Assembly: GCA_964199315.1 (NCBI GenBank)
Contig: OZ116699.1
Coordinates: 33,666,001-33,730,000 of the forward strand
Length of the DNA: 64,000 nucleotides
Source: Orbicella franksi
Taxonomy: Eukaryota
Reading direction: 5' to 3'
The notes under the pieces are model-generated. The model worked only from the letters and a program-made list of their open reading frames with translations. It made no database searches and was not told where the DNA came from. Shown piece by piece: positions 7,263-27,107 of the stretch (positions are counted from its first letter, which is position 1; every line of letters starts with the position of its first letter). The translations under genes were made by a program, and so were the position numbers.

Positions 7263-7855
7263 CGTATCGTTTAAGGTCCCGATAACTGAACTTCAGAAAC
7301 CAGCTGAACTTAATTTCCCAGTAGGAATCGCTCGTTATATAACTTTATTTGGATAGTAAAAATCCGTACTCCGAACGTTATTAAATTTTTGTTTTTGATG
7401 TAATTATTTTCTCACTTATTTACAAGAAATTGACCTTATTTACAAATGTACTGCTAAACCTAGTCGGGGTAAAATTGCCATTTTTTCCAGTCGCAGAGGA
7501 ATGAGGCTAAATGCATAAAGCGAGGCCAATACTGTGTTTTGCCAGAGTATAGCGAGAATGGAGGTAATTTCTATGGCTACCCTGTAACTCATCCAAGCAC
7601 ACTACCTCTGTAACACAACGATCATTCGGCCTGAGACTATTGACTGCAAGTTAAGAACTCTTCTAATTGTGATTAATTTGTTTTTCTAAATTGCAGTTAA
7701 TTACTGTCCTTGTAACTAGTTTTCATGGCCGTTTTCCGCTCTCTTTTCTCTTCTAATTGAGAGTATATTTTTCTTTCTAAATTGCATTGAGTTGCGGTCC
7801 TTGTTAAGTATAATTAGTTCCCATGACCGTTTTTCTCTTTCTCTGACTTTTTACG

Positions 7856-10800
7856 TCATTCAGTATCACCTCCTATCTCTCCGTCTTCTTTCTCTTCATG
7901 GAATGGCTTTTGATTGACGTTGTTCTTTTCCTTTTCCTCCCCCTCCGCCTCGTCTCCGTCCTTGTCCCCCTCAGTGGAAACTGATTCGAAAGCTACTTTC
8001 GTGTGCCCGACAATGATGGACGATGACAGCAATTCCTTCGGCACATTTCCCGGGGATTTCATGCGCAGATAGCGAGTGTGTTGAATCTCATCTACTGAAT
8101 GAGTCTTCTTCTCTTTTTGCGACGGAAATCGGTCTCTGCCCGCGACGTCATCGTCATCATCGCTGCTCCAAAAACACAGTTCCTCATTCTCCAGTCTTGG
8201 GAAGTCTCCCTCATCTTTCACAAGCTCCTCGCCTTCAGGCAGTTCAGCTTTGAGGGAAGACTCAATGAGCCACTCCTTTCCGATTTCCAAGGAAATTTGT
8301 TGCTTTTCTGTGGGCCTTGGTGAAACACTGTGATGGTTAAGTGATTCTGCCCGCGGAGATAACTCCTTTGCAGTTTGATCCCTCGTCAAACTGTTAACCC
8401 TTTTTCGGTATCTTTCTGCCCCTTCATCTTTGGATAGATTTGGAAGCGAGCCTCGAGCCAGTAGTTTAGGCAAGTGGAATAGATCTTCTTGAGAAGTTTG
8501 GGCCTGCTCGGTTACGATAGGCTGAAAACCCCGCAATCTTCTGAACTGAGGTGAAGGTGGTGCTCGCGGCGAAAGCCTTCCTTTATCAACATCCTGAAAT
8601 ATGTTTATAAAGAACGGGAAATTAGTTCAAATGATCTGAACTATACCATGGCAAAACAGGTTGCTTTTAAATGTCTGTTTTTTCATATAATGTAAAACCA
8701 TCTGATAGGACGGCTAACGCGAATTTTTCAAGTTGATCACTTGCTCATTTATCATTATTCTTTATTCTCCAAAGCTATGACTGGATTATAATATTACACA
8801 AAAATTCCTCTCTTGAAATGCCAAAGTAAAAATATCATTTCTGGAAAAAAAAAATAAGAAAACGTACAGCGCTATGTAAAAGCTGGAGGAAATTATTTTG
8901 AGTTTAATGTATTTCTAAACTTAAACAAAAAGGTCACAACATCTTATTGTTTAATGGTTGCGGAGAGCTGAGGTCGGCGCGTGACAACGTTAGAAACAAC
9001 CATTCACCCGAACGTCAATGGTTAACATGCTCGTTGTAACTGGTCAGCATTTGCAGTGTAATACCAGCTATTTAGTTATGACGTCACTCGAAATATTTCT
9101 CTCAGTTTGATAGGATAACCAAAATACAAAAAGAAAGTGTTTACATAAGAAAAGAGGATTGGTTTGGTACACCAACAAGGTCGCGGTGTCATTGTTTTGG
9201 AACACCAATACGGCTGCCGTGAGGTCATGTGGAAATGCAGTTTGCGCTTTAGATATTATTTGAACGTAATATTAAGCATTATTATGACTATATGAGTCAC
9301 TATTGCTACAGATTTTGAGTTTAGTCATTGAAGTATCGTCTGGTCTTGTCTCTTTCAGATGTATGTGCAAAACGGATTAAGCGCCCCTTCGCTAATGAGC
9401 GCACACTATACAAAAAACTAAATTAGTGCAGCGGAGACGAAATTGAATCATTTCGGTATAATTAATATAACAGTTCATACAGGCGATGTAGAGATGAAGA
9501 GCTAAAAATAATTCAGCACTATGAAACAGTGGAAGCTACTGGCGTTAAGGAACGAATACATAATGATGTTCTTATAAAACACATTACCGTTTACTAGTAT
9601 TAAAACAATTTACAGATAGCCGACCTTCAGAGAAAATGAACAATGCTTCTGGCTTTGTTGTACGGTACAGTAGAAACATTCTATTTTAACAATGAAACAA
9701 TAGAAATCAAGGCATGGGATGTTACAGAAAGTATTCAATGTGCAAACTTAACAACGAAACATGTCAGTTTACGTCTCTTGTCTGATCTGTGTTTGTTTTA
9801 ATCGATAATCACAATGAAGAAATTATAAGAACCTTAAAATATTTTCAACGTGTTATCGCAATTTAGCATAAGTTCATGCGACTTGTGGATGAAAATTTTC
9901 TCTCTGGTACCATGCGGTAATTTTGAATTGCGCCAGGCAATTTCAAGTACATGTGTTGAAACCTTCAGTCAAAGACAATTCATTTATTGCGGATTAAAAT
10001 TAACACCTCGCAGTTTTAAAGGACGTCCTTCGCCGGCTGACATAGCGAAGGGCCAAACTATTAGCAGAGTAATACCCGACATCGTTAATACAGGGTAGAT
10101 CCAGGACCTAAAATTCGCGCTATTGAAACAACTTAACCGCGGTCGACATCTAATCAACTTCTGGAACCCACACATTGTTTTCCTCGCATTCCTCGCTCTC
10201 TCTTCAACAGGCTTTGAATAATAAAACCAAAACCCTCTTTCGCGGCCATGATTCCCGTCTAAACGAACTTACCTCGAAGTCGACGGGCGATGTTTTCGCC
10301 CGTAGTCGCGCACCTTGTTTTGCAGTTGGCGTCGAAAACGATCGTTCCAAAGCTATCTTCGAATTTGTCCAACCAACATGAACAAAGTTCACTGGAGTGT
10401 CCAGCGTGTTAGCACGTCGTCTTTCTATACGCAGCGAGCAGGGCAAGGACCGTGTGCCTTTGTCAGGGTCTAGTGTATTTGAACTGCGCATTTGAGACAA
10501 AATTGGCGAAGGTGGTGCTGGAAGTCTAACTCCTGGTGAGCAAAGTGTCTGTTGAGTCGCTAGCCTGGTCTTGAAGTCGTTTCTTCCCCCGTCATTTGGT
10601 GACGCGAGACAAGCAGTTCGCAAATGTTCATCGATCTCTTGGCCATCCAAGGGTTCATTCCCATCCAGGGAAGTGGATAAATTTTTGTCAGAATCATTGC
10701 TTTTCTGGCGTTGATAAAATTTACTCTTTTGGTTACTTGAAGGCTGACTTTGAGGGCGCGCTGAATGTGTTGCCGACGATCCGCCTCGCTCACTTGTTGC

Positions 10801-11100
10801 ATTCTCAGAGAGAGCTCCTTTACAAAACTCAGCAACTGTTTGCTGCATGATGGCGCTGTCAGCTTCCGAGCCGGAACGAGTCCGGCGAATCGACGGAAGC
10901 TTACTCTTCCACAGTTGAAGAAAATCGAGCTTCTGTTTAGTCAGTGAATTCATCAAACTCCTTCGTTCTTTTTGCAAACGCGACAGCCCTTTCTTTAAGT
11001 CTTCGTCGTAGGCTGAATTTATGTTTAAGGCTTTCTTTATGTTTTCGCTGCGCATGGCGTCGTGTTGGGCCAGTTCCTTGAAAGACAATCCGTGAGCCAT
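7856..11100 (-). CDS. Unit A: CCDC190-like coiled-coil/disordered protein, 521 aa
   Basis: Exon 1 complement(10273-11100), from MAHGLSF to ...PVDFE|GTAAGT, phase 0. Exon 2 complement(7856-8593), from TTTCAG|DVDKGRLSP to the stop. N-terminal heptad segment, long S/R/P-rich disordered region and a C-terminal RYLR motif. The family call rests on recalled motif similarity. Confidence 0.72.
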
Positions 11101-11174
11101 ATTCCAAGGAAAGGATGCTTTGAAACTGCGACCGAGATATGATTCGTGTACGCATACAGCCAACATGTACACAA

Positions 11175-11234
11175 GCTCTTGTTTAGGATGCTTGCGTACT
11201 TTTAGCTCTTGTTTAGGATGCTTGCGTACTTTTT
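11175..11234. repeat. Perfect 30-bp tandem duplication just upstream of the unit A start codon
   Basis: GCTCTTGTTTAGGATGCTTGCGTACTTTT(A/T) twice. Confidence 0.9.
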
Positions 11235-11944
11235 ACCTCTACTTTTGTTTCAAGAACAATGGTGAAAAAATCCGTAAATGCATCCTTTGACATGTTTGAG
11301 TGCCTTCATAACAGGGTGAAGTGATTAATTATCAATTGATGTTGCTAGCCTTATTCAGTCCAATTTTATAGTTCAGTCACTCCTGTCACACTGACAATCA
11401 AAAGCTTAGAAGCCCCAAGGGCCCTGTGATTGTTGAAGAAGGAGCAGTCTCTTCGCTTCAAGCTCACGAGGAGTAGTCTTCACTATCTTCCTGGACTGTT
11501 TTGCTACCTTCTCCCGGCTCTCTCAAGGTCATTTATTCATTGATAAAATTTAATTAACAACAATTGATTTGGACATTACGCTCTGCCTTGCTGTCGCTAC
11601 TGAGTCAACTGATGCACCTCGTTTCCTGTCGCTGTAATTTGCTTCTGGGGCAGGCGTCGAAAATGTGAGGCACAGTGATCTTTTATATGTTAAGCTTCTT
11701 AGATTTTCAGTGAAAAATTACTTATTGAATTTATTATTATAATTATTTCAACCCAGGGCTTAACCTTGGGTTTAACTAAGAAAGTATAGAACTTTATAAT
11801 CGTAGAAGTTTCCTATTTGAAAAGCAGTGCACACACTTTCAAGCTTGCAAACTAGAAAACATGATAATTTACAGTGCAGATGCTTGTAGAATGACAATTT
11901 TTATTCGCTTCACTGAACACTTTAATAACATCCAGACAACTCAC

Positions 11945-12805
11945 CTCTCTACCGACCTCAGTTTCCTCGCAGCCCGAACTCATGGAACGAAGTTTATGAC
12001 TCGCTCCAATAAGCTCTGCGAGCACTTCTTTTCGCTTTACGCCTTTTGCCGTGTCCAAACTCTCTGCGCGGCGGCGGTGGGGAATAGGAGAAGACGGTAA
12101 CGACACACTCTTCCGTTCACCTGTGATGCGGTCGAGAGGATTTAAAAATTTCGAAGATTGCTGCTGCCTTTGCAAGAGAGGAGAATGAGGCAGCTGAGTT
12201 CCTAAGGTTGTAAAAGTGACGTGCACCCGAGAGTTCTTAAACAAGCCCATCCCTGGGTGCTCCTCAAATTCGTCATCTACTCCAGCTGCAATTCCACCGA
12301 CAGAGCTCTTTTTATCTGGTAACGAAAGTTGTTGGTCGAGCACCGGTTTTGTTTCGCTGGGTAGAATTGTAACTTGACTTTTTCGTATAATTTGCGGCGA
12401 GTCTGGCGGAGTAATGCATGCTTCAGGGGATATAGCAGGCTGTAAAAGAGGCAAAATTTTCTCTCCTCCGGACTTCGTCAGCAGAAGCTTCTGCGTTTCT
12501 TGAACTATCATGTCATGCGGCACGGACATCCTTTTCTTCGTTAGAAAACTCCTTTCACTAAGCTTATTTAAGTCTGGTAAATCAGCGTTATCTGGAGAAA
12601 CAGCATCTCTCGGCTCCTTTATGTCGTCCGATGAAAAACGAATTTTGGGAAGGGCAGAGATTCTTTCTATAAATTTTAACTTCTTCTCTCTTAGTGACCG
12701 TATAATCCGCTTGCGCTGCCCTTCGATATTTTCTAAATCCTTCTGTAGGTTTCCTTCGAATGTTGTGCTCCGATTGATGGCTTTTTTATATTCTCTACTA
12801 GTCAT
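11945..12805 (-). CDS. Unit B: large coding exon paralogous to unit A exon 1 (287 codons to a phase-0 donor; unspliced ORF continues to 11852)
   Basis: ATG at 12805 with an in-frame stop upstream. Shares KKA(I/L)N...L.K.L..(I/L)...R...SL...KL.F...LP.I and SLP.S....RRRA..LDT with unit A. Strong donor AGAGAG|GTGAGT at 11945/11944. Confidence 0.75.
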
Positions 12806-13372
12806 CTTCCGACTGATGTTTACAATATCTCTACATGACTTCTTCTGCGACGCTTTGAACTTTTCGGTCTATTCACGTGAACTCAACAGCGCCATAAACA
12901 GCCATTACTTGCCGAGTCTTGTCTACCTTTGTTAAATGCACGTCTAATTGGAGGTGTTCTTTTACTAATCTCCACCCAGGTTTGATGGATGAGAATATCA
13001 ATTAGATACTCTTTATTTGATTTACAGAAAAAACTAAGTTAAGTAAGATTCTGTTAAAACTGACAGGCAAATTAATGTGGCTGCACTTGAACCCTTGATT
13101 TCTACTTCACATGTTAACAGACCTCAACAAGTTTTTTCAGGACTAAATCTAAAACATTCAAATAAAACTAGTGCAACCTATTTAACAAAAATTAACGTCA
13201 GAAAGTAGAAGATTAATGCACTAAATTTTTCCTTCCCACTTATGAAATCGTTTAGACTGTTAAGCCATCCTCTCGAAATTAATTTGACTGAAAAATGAAT
13301 GAGTGATTTCGTCTGTTAATAATCACATTAAGCAGCAATTAGCGATAAACGGATTAGTGCTAGGTTGAGAAG

Positions 13373-13484
13373 TATGGGTTATTGACCAAGCTTGTTCGGT
13401 CAAGATGGCTGGATATTGGCCAAGGTCTTTTTTTGCGTGTTTATGGACCGAGACGGAGTCGAGGTTCAAAAACACGCAAAAAAA

Positions 13485-13519
<35 letters not shown>

Positions 13520-13689
13520 AAGCTTGGTCAATAAAGGATTTATTATATGGCTTACGGGGAAATTTTTCTTGCAGGACACGGCGGGTAGTCCCGAACGGGC
13601 AAGATAGCTCTATCTTGCCCGCTCGGGTAGCCAATCACAGCGCAGGATTTGATTCATCTTGCCCGCTCACGGAGCTAGCCACATAATAA
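13373..13689. mobile_element. Interspersed repeat with a perfect 42-bp internal inverted repeat; partial inverted copy at ~51460-51650
   Basis: TATTGACCAAGCTTGTTCGGTCAAGATGGCTGGATATTGGCC (13380-13421) pairs with 13492-13533. It also has repeated ATCTTGCCCGCTC motifs. Homologous text is present at 51460-51650. Confidence 0.8.
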
Positions 13690-13833
13690 TGTTAATTCTA
13701 ATCCCGAAGCCAAAACGTTTGTTGCGAAACAAAAAGCCGGACTTAAAAATCAATTAATCATTTGTGCAAATTAGGCCACTGTAGTCTCAATAAGCTCAAC
13801 GCACTTGCGTTAGTTCGAACTGCAAGTAACTTT

Positions 13834-14201
13834 AGGTGTGGCGAATGGTCCTTCAAAAACCATGGGTCTGGCAAAATTTTCGCCGAATTTCACGGGTCTC
13901 GCAGTATCGTTTTTTAGCGGTTATGTGCGTCTCGCAGTCTCGATTTTTCTCACAAAGCTATCTTGCAGTCTCGATTTTTTTTCAAGGCTAAGAAAATCGC
14001 GAAGTACCGATTTGTTTATTTTTTTTTTAGTAAAGTTAAATGACGTCACAACATGTTACAACCTGAACGTCTTCAGTTCGCATTTAAAACACTTTAAAGT
14101 CTCGGTCTCGCAATTGAAGAAATCAAAATGTCTCAGGCTCGCAAAGAAAAACGCTGATCTCGTCGTCTCGCAAAGCCTCGCATTTGCCATTCGCCACCCC
14201 T
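13834..14201. mobile_element. MITE with TIR (T)AGGTGTGGCGAATGG / CCATTCGCCACCCCT(A) and GTCTCGCA subterminal repeats
   Basis: 16-bp TIR with 1 mismatch, flanked by the direct repeat AACTTT (13828-13833 and 14202-14207). Confidence 0.75.
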
Positions 14202-14703
14202 AACTTTCAAGATTTTAGCTCAAAGATCACTGTTTGGCAAGTCTGCCAAACAAGATTTACGTTTTCTTCGAATGATCTTCCCACTGCTTTCAGTCGGCTG
14301 TTAGATTCTTAGACGGAATAATTGAAAAAGTCCGTGCTAGTCCGCGCGCGGCCCACTGAAACTCTAAGTTCGTTGCCAGATCTCTTCTGACGAGGATGAT
14401 CACTCCTCTGTCCAGCCAGGCTTTGGTCGTTTTTACTCAATCTCGTTCTCATAGTTTATCCAAGATGGCGTGAAGGGAGAGATTACCTGTCCGCCAAGTT
14501 GGATAAACCATTGGCACAGCCCTTTAGCCTGGGACTAGCATTAAGGCTTTACAGAAAGTGGACTACCAAAAAATTCGTGCGCGCTGAAAAATTCTCATCC
14601 CCATCCGGTCCGGGTCTTAACCGGGCTATAACCGCATAGAGGAAGCCCGTGGTCTCAACATGCACGTTCTCGTCACGAACCAAGAGTTGTCGGTCAGCGT
14701 CAG

Positions 14704-14929
14704 TAGGGAGCTTTAGCATGCGCGTTTTTGAGACGCGGACGGCAACCGGAAGAGAAGATTTCGCATGCTAGGACCGTATTGTCTCCCAGATTTTTTATAC
14801 TACTCATCTCTAATGAAGAAAAGATACTTAGCAATGTGAATATGGCTGTGTGAGGACAAGTTAAAAGTGAAAGTAGCTCACTTCCGGCTACCGTCCGCGT
14901 CTCAAAAACGGGCGTGCTTAAGTCCCCTA
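14704..14929. mobile_element. MITE, TAGGGAGCTT-type TIR
   Basis: TAGGGAGCTTTAGCATGCGCGTTTTTGAGACGCGGACGGCAACCGGAAG pairs with CTTCCGGCTACCGTCCGCGTCTCAAAAACGGGCGTGCTTAAGTCCCCTA. Confidence 0.8.
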
Positions 14930-15918
14930 GTACGACCTTCAGCAGCGAGATTGCCATCATGATGTTCTTCTATGCGCACGCCCTGGGGACGAATGCTGCC
15001 TTGCAGGAATGCGTACTGCACAATATATAATAGCCTCCCTCCTCTTTACGGTAGTTTGGATGACAGCGCTGAATTAACCGGAAAGTAAACAGCCCTATTT
15101 GCAATCACATTTAACTTAATCACTACAAACCGTAATGAACACAATTGTTCCCCCCAAACAACTGTATTTCAGTTACCCAGAAATACGACAAGGTGATTTA
15201 AGTAATCTGTTCATTCAAAGAAGAAAGAGAAACTCTCTGCGGTTTAGCTTTGGAAAATCAACCACGACAAATTTTTTAAAAACCGGAACTAAATTTTTTG
15301 AAAGTAAGATCGAACCTAAGAAAAGGGTCAGTAATCCAGTCTATTGTACCTCAAGAGGTCACTAAGTGACTTTCCGGTGTTGCTGATTGTTTCATGTTAC
15401 GAAATATTCATCAAGCTTGCATAATTTCTTTTCAGTTTTCATTCAAAGGTTTTAGCAGACCAACCCCAGAGTCCGCCTACTGCATTATCTTCTGTCAGGA
15501 GCCCACTATGCCCCTAATTGTGTACATTTAGCCTGACACCTTCCGGGGAGTGATTTTCAGGCTATGGCTGTAATTGAAGAAAAACGATGAAAAGTTTTAG
15601 CTTTTAACTCCAAAAGGCATGATATTTTCCGTGAATAATTAAGGGGAACAATGCTAAGAAAACGCTGGTAACTAAGTACGTGACTTCATCAGTTTGTTAA
15701 AATGATAAAAAGTACGTATAACCGATCTCATTAATGGTGCAAAGACGTTAATTACGACCCGTTAATGAGCACAATTATACCTCGCTTGTAAACCCCAGAA
15801 AATCAGCAAATTACAAAACGCTAATGCAACTGCATTCGCACTCAGTTCTACAGTGAATTCCAAGCCCTGCAGAGATTCTTTTAAAACCACATACTGCGGC
15901 TAGAACTCACAGTTAGCT

Positions 15919-16935
15919 ATGGAGTCCGTGACATTTGTGTACTCTTTGGCCACAGAACAGGAGAAGCAAACAGAAGCACTTAAAAATCAAGAGCAAAATC
16001 AACTCGATAAATACCGCGCTCTAATTCAAAAGCAGATGGAAAAAGAGAGAGCTTTCCTGTCCTATAAGAAAATTGAATTTCTCTCCAGGCAAGAGGCAAA
16101 GTTAGGCGGAAAAATAAGGCCGTTGTCCGCCCGTGTGCGCACGGGGGACCACCTTCCTGAAATAACATCGAAAGCACAGCCGAAAGAGATGGCGCATAAA
16201 AATGGATTACTCGGAACGAGGACTGAAACACGGAATTTAACGCCATTTATTTACCGTCAGAGGACACATTTGGGAATGGTGGTCGCTTCTTCGAAACCGA
16301 GAAGTAACAGAACAAGTCCAGCAGAAGGCAGGAAATCTTGTCTGATCACGTTGACTGGGTCAAATAGCCCTGTTGTAAATTCCAAAATGCATAACCAGAA
16401 GGAAAGAAAAAGTGTTCATTTTAAGAGTGACGGAAAAGCAACGAGATATTTCCCCAAATACAAGAATTCAAAGCCGCTGACAATTAAAGGACCGCAAGAA
16501 ATCGAAATCGAAACTTTAAGGAAACGAAGGTTAACTCTATCAAAATGCGAGAGTCCACTGAATGAATCAACGAGAGCCCAAAAGGAAATGGTCTCCGAGA
16601 ACTGCCGACATCTTAAAGAGAAAGAATCAAAAGACCGGGGCTCTATCGATTGCTCCCGAAAGAGCGATTCACACAGCTTCGGAAAAATCGAGGCAACTGC
16701 AGCTACAAACCTATCCGGAATGAGCGTAAGCTGAGCTGTGGTGGCGCGTCTGATTGGACTGAAAACGAAGTTTAAAAGGCGGCGATTGCATGGCACTTTC
16801 CAGGCGCCCGAGTTAGAAGTGTTGGACCCATCGCTTAAGCATGACAGGAGGTTCGGTCAGGCGAAACCTAATGACCCCTGGAAAGCAGTGAAGGGCTGTA
16901 GATATCTGAGAATTCCGACAAGAAACGATACATAA
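15919..16935 (+). CDS. Unit C: divergent CCDC190-like paralog (315 aa if the 78-nt intron 16726-16803 is spliced)
   Basis: ORF 15919-16734 carries the same L-x-K-x4-[IL]-x10-L-x3-K-[IL]-x-F motif. The same frame resumes after TGA and ends in DPWKAVKGCRYLR. GTAAGC (16726) ... ACTTTCCAG (16803) defines a phase-0 intron that removes the stop. Confidence 0.68.
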
Positions 16936-25300: not shown

Positions 25301-27107
25301 TGTGGTCCAAGCCACGCACATGATACTGCAGTGACTGCATGAAGTGTATTATTATGTTCCAGTGATGTTGCTGTTGCTGATGAATTTTCCCAGAGTTGTA
25401 TATATAATATTCAATTTTGAAAATCACTAGGCAGGTTGGATGGAGAATTTGCTAGCTGCAGCTGGCAGCTTGTTGCTATATTGAACCCCTCTGATCACAT
25501 TGTTTTTCTGCTAAAATTGTTGCTAGGACTTGACATGTTAACTAGAAAAACCTGCATTATTGGGAAATATATAGTTATTATAATGATAAATCAATTCACA
25601 TGTACATGACATAAATGAAAAAGGTCTCTCCCAAATAATGAATTTGGTCCTTGCTAAAACCTCACTTCTGTAAAATTGAAAATGTTGAACCTTGTAAGGA
25701 ATGCTGTAGATTTAAGTATTTTATATTATATTTTCTTATCCTTTACTTGCTTCTTTTTTGTTTCCATAGTTCTATTCATGATCACACTGATGCCCACTGC
25801 TTCCTGAAGGTGCTAGATGGAAGACTTAAAGAAACACAGTATCCATGGCCCTCAGACTCTGAGCCTGAGAAACCTCTGGAACCAACAGCGTCAAGATTTT
25901 ATGAGACTAATGAAGTCAACTACATCAATGGTATGTCTAAACCAATGATATGTCTGCTCATTGATGAATAGCGTTCACTCATCGTGCTTAAAAGCAAAAT
26001 ATTATTCGCCATGATTAAATCTTCCCCCTAAATTTGGCACCTGCCCATTACACTGAAATTGGACACCATGCAAGAGGAAAATTTTGTGGAAGTTTATTTT
26101 TGTGACTGTTTAATGGGTAATTTGTAAATTGGATTTAGCAAGATCAAGATGTTGTGACCTAACTTAATAAACTTAAACTACAACTGATAAGACAAGTGAT
26201 AAGTTTCTTGGTGGAAACCAGTCATGAAATTCTTTTATTTAAAAGGATATTAATTCCTTGAGCATTAGACAAGATGCTAAAAGTTAGTCACTGGCTGGGA
26301 ACTAACCTTGAAATTCTGGTCACCAACACTCAAGTTTTGGCTGCAGTGCTGACCAGCTGGTCACAATTTCAGACCCTGAAAAAGGAAATGTGTAAGTGAC
26401 TTAAGCCCTGGCCAAACAAAGTTGCAAGTATACGCAAGTTGTGAACTTGCGTTTACTTGCAACTCCGTTTGGGCAGGCCTTGTGTGCACTTGCGTTGACT
26501 TGCAATGACTTGTGCTCACTTTGGTCAAGATCAAATTTGCATCCAAGTCGACGCAAGTTTTTCACCGTTTGGCCACCCTACCCAAGTCCACGCAAGTTGA
26601 GTGACGTACATTAACCTATTATTAGCCAATGAAATACAGGGTATTTTTGCATTGAAATGGGTTTTTTGTGACTTGCATGTACTTGTGAGGAAATGTGCGA
26701 GTCCGTTTGGCCATGCAACGCAAGTTCAACTTGCGGCTACTTACAACTATTTGTGATTCAGTTTGGCCAGGGCTTTAAACTCTGTCCTTTCTTTTGTAAC
26801 AGACAGCATAGGTCTTCATCGTGTGGAGAACGTTAGCCATACTGACACAGCTGCATCACTTCATGTCTACATCCCAGCATTTGACATGTGTCAGTCATTT
26901 GACCAGCGCACAGGATACAAGCGGAAATGTCAAGTGACATTCTGGAGCAAGTTTGGCTCGAGAACACCTTATGTGAGTATAACACATTCCTTATGTCTGA
27001 GCTCTGAGTATTTGCTATCCAATTGCTATTTTAACAAGGATGTTTAGTTTGACTGCTAATTTACACTCTGTTTCTTGTTTCAGAAACCAAGCTCATGTGC
27101 CAACTAA
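22370..27107 (+). CDS. CDO1: Cysteine dioxygenase type 1, 201 aa
   Basis: Exons 22370-22542, 22643-22720, 25770-25930, 26803-26972, 27084-27107 (606 nt, in frame). Motifs RYTRNLVDEGNGKFNL, SSIHDHTDAHCFLKVL, GLHRVEN and SLHVY, so the three Fe-binding His and the Cys/Tyr crosslink residues are present. Confidence 0.97.
26401..26778. mobile_element. MITE with TTAA-associated termini in CDO1 intron 3
   Basis: TTAAGCCCTGGCCAAAC ... GTTTGGCCAGGGCTTTAA, with many internal GCAAGT/ACTTGC motifs. Confidence 0.8.

Follow-up and report, generated by a model that had tools for sequence, protein, structure and literature searches.

The window analysed here is a 64,000-nucleotide stretch of the Orbicella franksi genome (contig OZ116699.1, positions 33,666,001 to 33,730,000 of the forward strand). 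Positions 7,856 to 16,935 within it hold three protein-coding units, hereafter gene A, unit B and gene C, whose features are listed in Table 1. All three are members of an undescribed, lineage-restricted family that spans the cnidarians; its proteins are mostly disordered and have a conserved helix at either terminus. An earlier interpretation made from the letters of the DNA, hereafter the sequence-only reading, had proposed three paralogs sharing a 26-residue coiled-coil signature and resembling vertebrate CCDC190. In a synteny comparison, the gene order C, B, first exon of A (A1), second exon of A (A2) was kept in other corals; in L011, the single locus that extended far enough, a further member, unit D, comes after A2.

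Table 1. Features of the gene A, unit B and gene C locus (positions within the window; HMM, hidden Markov model).
Feature	Positions	Strand	Description
Gene A, exon 1	10273-11100	-	276 codons, MAHG...DFE; N-terminal helix domain and disordered linker with RSLPCS..RRRANTLDT
Gene A, N-terminal helix domain	10876-11100	-	Includes the segment 10918-10998 of the sequence-only reading; 74-99 bits on the family HMMs
Gene A, intron	8594-10272	-	GTAAGT...TTTCAG, phase 0 on both sides; predicted from the sequence and from splice-site conservation
Gene A, exon 2 (constant exon)	7856-8593	-	C-terminal anchor ...EIQHTRYLRMKSP..LLSSSIIVGH and acidic tail; stop codon 7856-7858
Gene A, RYLR codons	8063-8074	-	In exon 2
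Unit B, paralogous first exon	11945-12805	-	Intact, 287 codons; phase-0 donor RE/GTGAGT; without an RYLR of its own
Gene C to premature stop	15919-16734	+	271 codons and TGA at 16732-16734; includes the segment 16003-16083 of the sequence-only reading
Gene C, in-frame continuation past the stop	16735-16935	+	AVVARLIGLKTKFKRRRLHGTFQAPELEVLD...WKAVKGCRYLRIPTRNDT*; corresponds to the family C-terminal anchor
Gene C, CRYLR codons	16897-16911	+	Behind the in-frame TGA

The three 27-residue peptides on which the sequence-only reading was built are encoded exactly at 10918-10998 in A and 12668-12748 in B, both on the minus strand, and at 16003-16083 in C, on the plus strand. The strand of the A and B segments had not been given, and a plus-strand reading of them yields stops. 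The ungapped alignment of the three segments and its residue pattern also hold. By sequence comparison, A and B are certainly paralogs. BLASTP of A against B returned two collinear matches (E 3e-4 and 8e-4), residues 1-253 of B matched A orthologs of other corals by tblastn (E 2e-11 and 7e-9), and B scored 64-72 bits on the family N-domain HMMs. The two proteins have in common the N-terminal helix and a ...SLP.SP...RRRA.[ST]LDT island. The statement that each protein is largely unalignable outside the signature was therefore wrong for A and B, which align over ~250 residues. Hydrophobic periodicity in the N-domain of A peaked at 101 degrees, a period that fits an amphipathic or coiled-coil helix.

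Splice-site conservation indicates that gene A is a two-exon gene with the RYLR anchor in its second exon. The C-terminal RYLR segment that the sequence-only reading had attributed to A is thus present, on a separate exon. In each of the 23 database homologs, the exon 1 sequence closes with DFE and a translated GTAAGT comes next, and the donor GAG/GTAAG is kept in 4 other corals. Exon 2 is kept in 7 orthologous loci and the acceptor TTTCAG/GA in most of these; no conserved block was found inside the A intron in divergent corals. The ratio of nonsynonymous to synonymous substitution rates (dN/dS) was 0.38 for exon 1 and 0.35-0.63 for exon 2. Orthologs of exon 2 carry a strongly conserved TRYLRMK[SP]P.HWLPKMGNVPK.LLSSSIIVGH segment. 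The window copy of exon 2 is without the 7 residues HHWLPKM between RYLRMKSP and GNVPKELL (8040-8062, minus strand), which are present in all 7 orthologous loci.

Unit B would acquire an RYLR anchor only through splicing to exon 2 of A, having none of its own. B most likely splices onto that exon, because its donor and the A1 donor are conserved and share phase 0 with a single conserved acceptor, no other downstream exon is conserved, and the only RYLR codons found near B are those of A2. The B donor, GT[AG]AG directly after ...RE, persists in each of the five loci with a retained B, the most divergent included. At the DNA level, only the first exon of B (B1), A1 with ~280 nt upstream of it, and A2 were conserved in divergent corals, and a search across these corals returned no conserved second exon specific to B. 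Similarly, no conserved RYLR exon was found within 6.5 kb as a second exon for the upstream member D.

A different account denies that B serves A as an alternative first exon. On this view B is either an independent single-exon gene, read through its donor as far as the stop at 11852, or a duplicate in decay that yields no product. Consistent with this, the B open reading frame (ORF) continues for 31 codons beyond the donor, and B is frameshifted in L008 (5770-6621), L009 (5787-6638) and L014, is mostly deleted in L012 (7507-7602) and gave no match in locus L013. The broken stretches of L014 (6051-6909 and 9635-10483) cover the B frameshift and an in-frame stop in A exon 1. Contigs from RNA libraries were also thin over exons and introns alike, and junction reads were not observed. 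Set against these points, the sequence beyond the B donor is not conserved in divergent corals, B1 has a dN/dS of 0.27 against L010, and the donor persists in phase with the A1 donor and the acceptor wherever B has been retained. An independent or decaying B is accordingly regarded as a possibility of lesser weight, and splicing of B onto exon 2 of A is preferred.

Gene C required separate treatment. The 26-residue signature had been taken to unite all three paralogs; this stands for A and B, but the N-terminal match of C is not above chance. BLASTP of C against A and B returned no match. In a profile comparison with hhalign, the C N-terminus scored 14.8 against the family (P 0.022), a score reached by 4.5% of column shuffles, and P ranged from 0.02 to 0.66 over the comparisons made. 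HMM scores of C in the N-terminal segment fell within those of shuffled controls, an outcome that the sequence-only reading had itself listed as one that would speak against it.

The C-terminus behaved differently. The tail of C aligned with the family C-terminal anchor by hhalign with P 8e-6 and a probability of 84%; its score of 44.1 compares with 11.9 ± 2.4 (maximum 25.8) for shuffled tails, and 0 of 300 shuffles reached it. The match extends over 21 columns (DPWk.VKgCRYLRmP against L..lfeeIr.CRYLR.g), with scores of 44-48. Gene C very probably belongs to the family because of this CRYLR helix match and its conserved synteny, and not because of the 26-residue signature. The contrary proposal is that C is unrelated to A and B, its 26-residue match and its RYLR being coincidences among charged, helical and disordered neighbours. 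The N-terminal similarity of C is indeed at noise level, and a six-frame translation of the window contains two further occurrences of RYLR. However, the C-terminal score exceeds every shuffle, the match sits, like that of other members, at the very end of the protein, four further loci also have C next to B and A, and the N-terminus, though it aligns weakly, does so every time in the register that the sequence-only reading had proposed. Coincidence is consequently considered improbable.

In the window, the reading frame of gene C is open beyond the TGA through ...GCRYLRIPTRNDT*, ending at 16935. A total of 26 C orthologs were found. In all 13 full-length orthologs inspected (4 syntenic and 9 further database sequences, one of them 96% identical), Trp occupies the position of the TGA, and in C orthologs the tail and the ORF are continuous as one reading frame. 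The dN/dS of gene C was 0.33-0.65 up to the stop and 0.19-0.31 in the tail behind it. Gene C therefore appears to carry a recent nonsense change, or else an assembly error, that removes a conserved tail, because orthologs read through with Trp and the tail still has a dN/dS of 0.19-0.31. A 78-nt intron at 16726-16803 that would remove the stop was rejected, since in orthologs these positions encode conserved protein without a break and have Trp in place of the stop. An [RK]..VHF motif was present in 14 of the 26 C orthologs. Across at least 10 studies, 14 RNA libraries, polyA libraries among them, contained 31-65% of the words of the gene C stretch.

The sequence-only reading had further described an expanded two-anchor scaffold family with a phosphosite-rich linker. 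The N-terminal helix, a C-terminal helix ending in ...RY[LI]R and a basic, disordered S/R/P-rich linker were all recovered; the scaffold role is putative. The N-domain, an amphipathic helix, comprises ~55 residues with the pattern ...[KR][KR]A[VLM]..N......L......[IL][QE].[EQ]R......[LW]...[KQ]..F......LP, in which A, N, L, F and the closing P are near-invariant. The C-terminal amphipathic helix of the family ends in [CLT]RY[LI]R, and most full-length members end in [LF]..I[RK].CRY[LI]R. Between the two helices lies a long, basic, S/R/P-rich linker with motifs resembling basophilic phospho-acceptor sites (RRRAxTLD, K.RRIS and RRRSKSFSD); R-R-R-x-x-[ST]-hydrophobic or RRxS motifs occur in the A, B, L002 and L005 groups as consensus-level matches only. 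Single-exon paralogs on chromosomes C7 and C9 hold both anchors in one ORF, ending in ...ECRYLRVG and ...DLRYLRTG, and octocoral and jellyfish relatives likewise carry both. For the C7-type single-exon paralog group, AlphaFold2 predicted a helix at residues 8-62 (predicted local distance difference test, pLDDT, 80-91) and helices at 274-300 and 310-324 leading up to CRYLR, with the remainder disordered.

The range of the family was assessed by profile and alignment searches. Against 1.84 billion representative proteins, the N-domain profile retrieved 53 clusters at E <= 1e-3, all of the same family. The named members are all cnidarian (Paramuricea clavata, Stylophora pistillata, Desmophyllum pertusum and the jellyfish Sanderia malayensis). 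An alignment search covering 5.8 billion proteins yielded nothing but close relatives from within the family, none of them with a Pfam domain. A Foldseek comparison of the paralog model with the Swiss-Prot portion of the AlphaFold database found nothing beyond noise at template-modelling (TM) scores <= 0.15, and ESM Atlas look-alikes of the full-length paralog and of exon 2 had chance-level scores of 0.75-0.81.

The O. franksi genome itself (497 Mb) contains 8 N-domain matches. Five lie within ~35 kb on the chromosome of the window: A, B, D (~15 kb beyond the 3' end of A), E and a stop-containing degenerate copy. With C included, the cluster has 6 units. The remaining matches are two in tandem on C7 and a single one on C9. 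The genome count of members is put at seven or eight at least, with five or six in the cluster. Unit E is an intact ORF of 249 codons of the Stylophora PFX22143.1 type, unit D ends in a GTATGT donor, and the degenerate upstream copy has a TAA stop. These three units are located just upstream of the window (C2:33647632-33659469), at L024 922-1671 (minus strand), in L025, and at L003 1420-2283 (plus strand). The dN/dS estimates over the family units ranged from 0.19 to 0.65, which shows moderate purifying selection. Judged from the loci compared, turnover of members between corals is high, B being broken or lost in several and A1 broken in L014.

Other elements were observed within and around the cluster. 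Between B and C, window positions 13323-13686 hold a repeated element whose ORFs overlap on the two strands (MAGYWPRSFF...GQYPAILTEQAWSI); it recurs at L025 922-1338, ~10 kb upstream of the window, beside the degenerate family copy. In another coral, RVT_1 reverse-transcriptase ORFs lie between B and A (L008 7419-8444 and L009 7314-7856); these are absent from the window. Elsewhere in the window, a 43-codon ORF at 25817-25945 (plus strand) includes SLRNLWNQQRQDFMRLMKS, which resembles the second half of the family N-domain. This ORF scored 12-13 bits on the N-domain (E 0.002 among 710 window ORFs) and may be what remains of a further member of the family.

The kinship with CCDC190 proposed in the sequence-only reading found no support: the Pfam CC190 model (PF15768) matches none of the family sequences compared with it, and the reverse profile reaches no vertebrate protein. 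The sequences compared with the model were A exon 1, A exon 2, B, C, the C tail, 8 paralogs or orthologs, the 41 profile hits, 10 further proteins and 10 anchor segments. These ~70 proteins, exons and anchor segments of 60 residues gave no match at a limit of E 10, or of E 1 in the case of the 41 profile hits. Searched against the whole genome, CC190 gave a best score of 15.8 bits (E 2.75), well under its gathering score of 27 bits, in an unrelated ORF on chromosome C4, which is noise. That match involved model positions 205-262 and shows only that the C-terminal part of the model drives its weak matches. The N-domain profile recovered no vertebrate protein among the representatives, CC190 was not among the results of the language-model and fold searches, and literature searches on CCDC190 and CRYLR yielded nothing functional, with only passing mentions of CCDC190 among the papers retrieved.

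The family could nevertheless be the cnidarian counterpart of CCDC190, too diverged for HMMER to detect. In favour of this, the overall layout of CCDC190 is alike: its coiled coil is N-terminal, the protein is otherwise disordered, and a YLR-containing segment lies at the C-terminal end. The conserved TRYLRMK[SP]P...LLSSSIIVGH of A2 orthologs can be counted towards such kinship. Its likeness to the YLR...P....LLS...I.GH segment that the sequence-only reading attributed to CCDC190 is an unconfirmed lead. Given the uniformly negative model, profile, language-model and fold searches, the counterpart explanation is considered quite unlikely, and the family is not demonstrably CCDC190.

The preferred interpretation, to which we assign a probability of roughly 0.6, is that A, B and C belong to a cnidarian-wide disordered two-helix family arranged here as a tandem cluster, in which A has two exons, B probably uses exon 2 of A, and C is a divergent member with a nonsense change. 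Local duplication would have produced the cluster, part of which lies in the window. B would be a duplicated first exon spliced onto the second exon of A, and C a divergent single-exon member on the opposite strand. Alternative first exons would then vary the head and linker while the RYLR tail stays constant. The terminal helices may serve as docking or oligomerisation modules and the linker as a tether regulated by phosphorylation at its conserved basophilic Ser/Thr motifs, in which case the family proteins would act as small scaffolds or adaptors.

Several observations weigh against this interpretation. B has decayed in several corals, so it may be disappearing in O. franksi too. The C ORF scored 0.6 bits on a family HMM built without C, about rank 63 of the 710 window ORFs, and the 26 C orthologs scored -1.3 to 4.7 bits on a 136-sequence N-domain HMM compared with -1.0 ± 1.9 for shuffles. 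In 4 RNA runs, no spliced read was found that joins A1 or B1 to A2. Over region 7500-13400, two polyA raw-read runs labelled as the same species had 0-1 reads. One metatranscriptome covered the exons and the introns equally thinly. One small RNA-library run (X2) contained 10080-11696 at a word depth of ~1700-2300, unspliced across the A1 donor; the stretch is continuous and ends ~190 nt into the A intron. This signal represents either an abundant unspliced transcript of A1 only or an amplified fragment. Also listed on this side is a homodimer prediction with two copies of the A N-helix, which gave a score of 0.01 and speaks neither for nor against.

A more far-reaching version can be put forward only tentatively. 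It would describe a pan-cnidarian, Pfam-less family that docks through paired terminal helices and that forms, at this locus, a miniature variable-head/constant-tail system. B1 and A1 would each supply their own promoter, N-helix and phospho-linker and be spliced to one RYLR exon, with rapid gain and loss among coral lineages.

Among known systems, UGT1A and the clustered protocadherins are loci with variable first exons and constant exons. The present locus is like them in having tandem large first exons, B1 and A1, with same-phase donors upstream of a single acceptor and a constant exon that encodes a shared C-terminal module. In contrast to those loci, it has two first exons only, the upstream one is lost or broken in several species, and both junctions are predicted from sequence; its products would be disordered proteins of a cytosolic type and not receptors or enzymes. 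CCDC190, an uncharacterised vertebrate coiled-coil protein, is alike in its ~300 residues, N-terminal coiled coil, disordered remainder and lack of a known function, whereas the present family is multi-copy and clustered, has one member with its anchors split over two exons, and includes, among the sequences compared, none that the CC190 model detects. Disordered scaffolds and regulators with short docking motifs include regulators of protein phosphatase 1 (PP1; RVxF) and clients of AGC kinases and 14-3-3 proteins. The family resembles these in that its conservation is limited to short islands within long disorder, the motif matches being at consensus level only.

The family is undescribed but is an ordinary kind of lineage-restricted, scaffold-like family, with nothing mechanistically surprising about it. 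Its proteins are labelled by automatic annotation only as scattered hypotheticals, and they are now given anchors, a range (Anthozoa and Scyphozoa) and a copy number. Gene models at the locus are corrected to a two-exon A, a probable shared exon for B and a putative nonsense allele in C. If the terminal helices are docking modules, the family would offer a tractable scaffold system specific to cnidarians.

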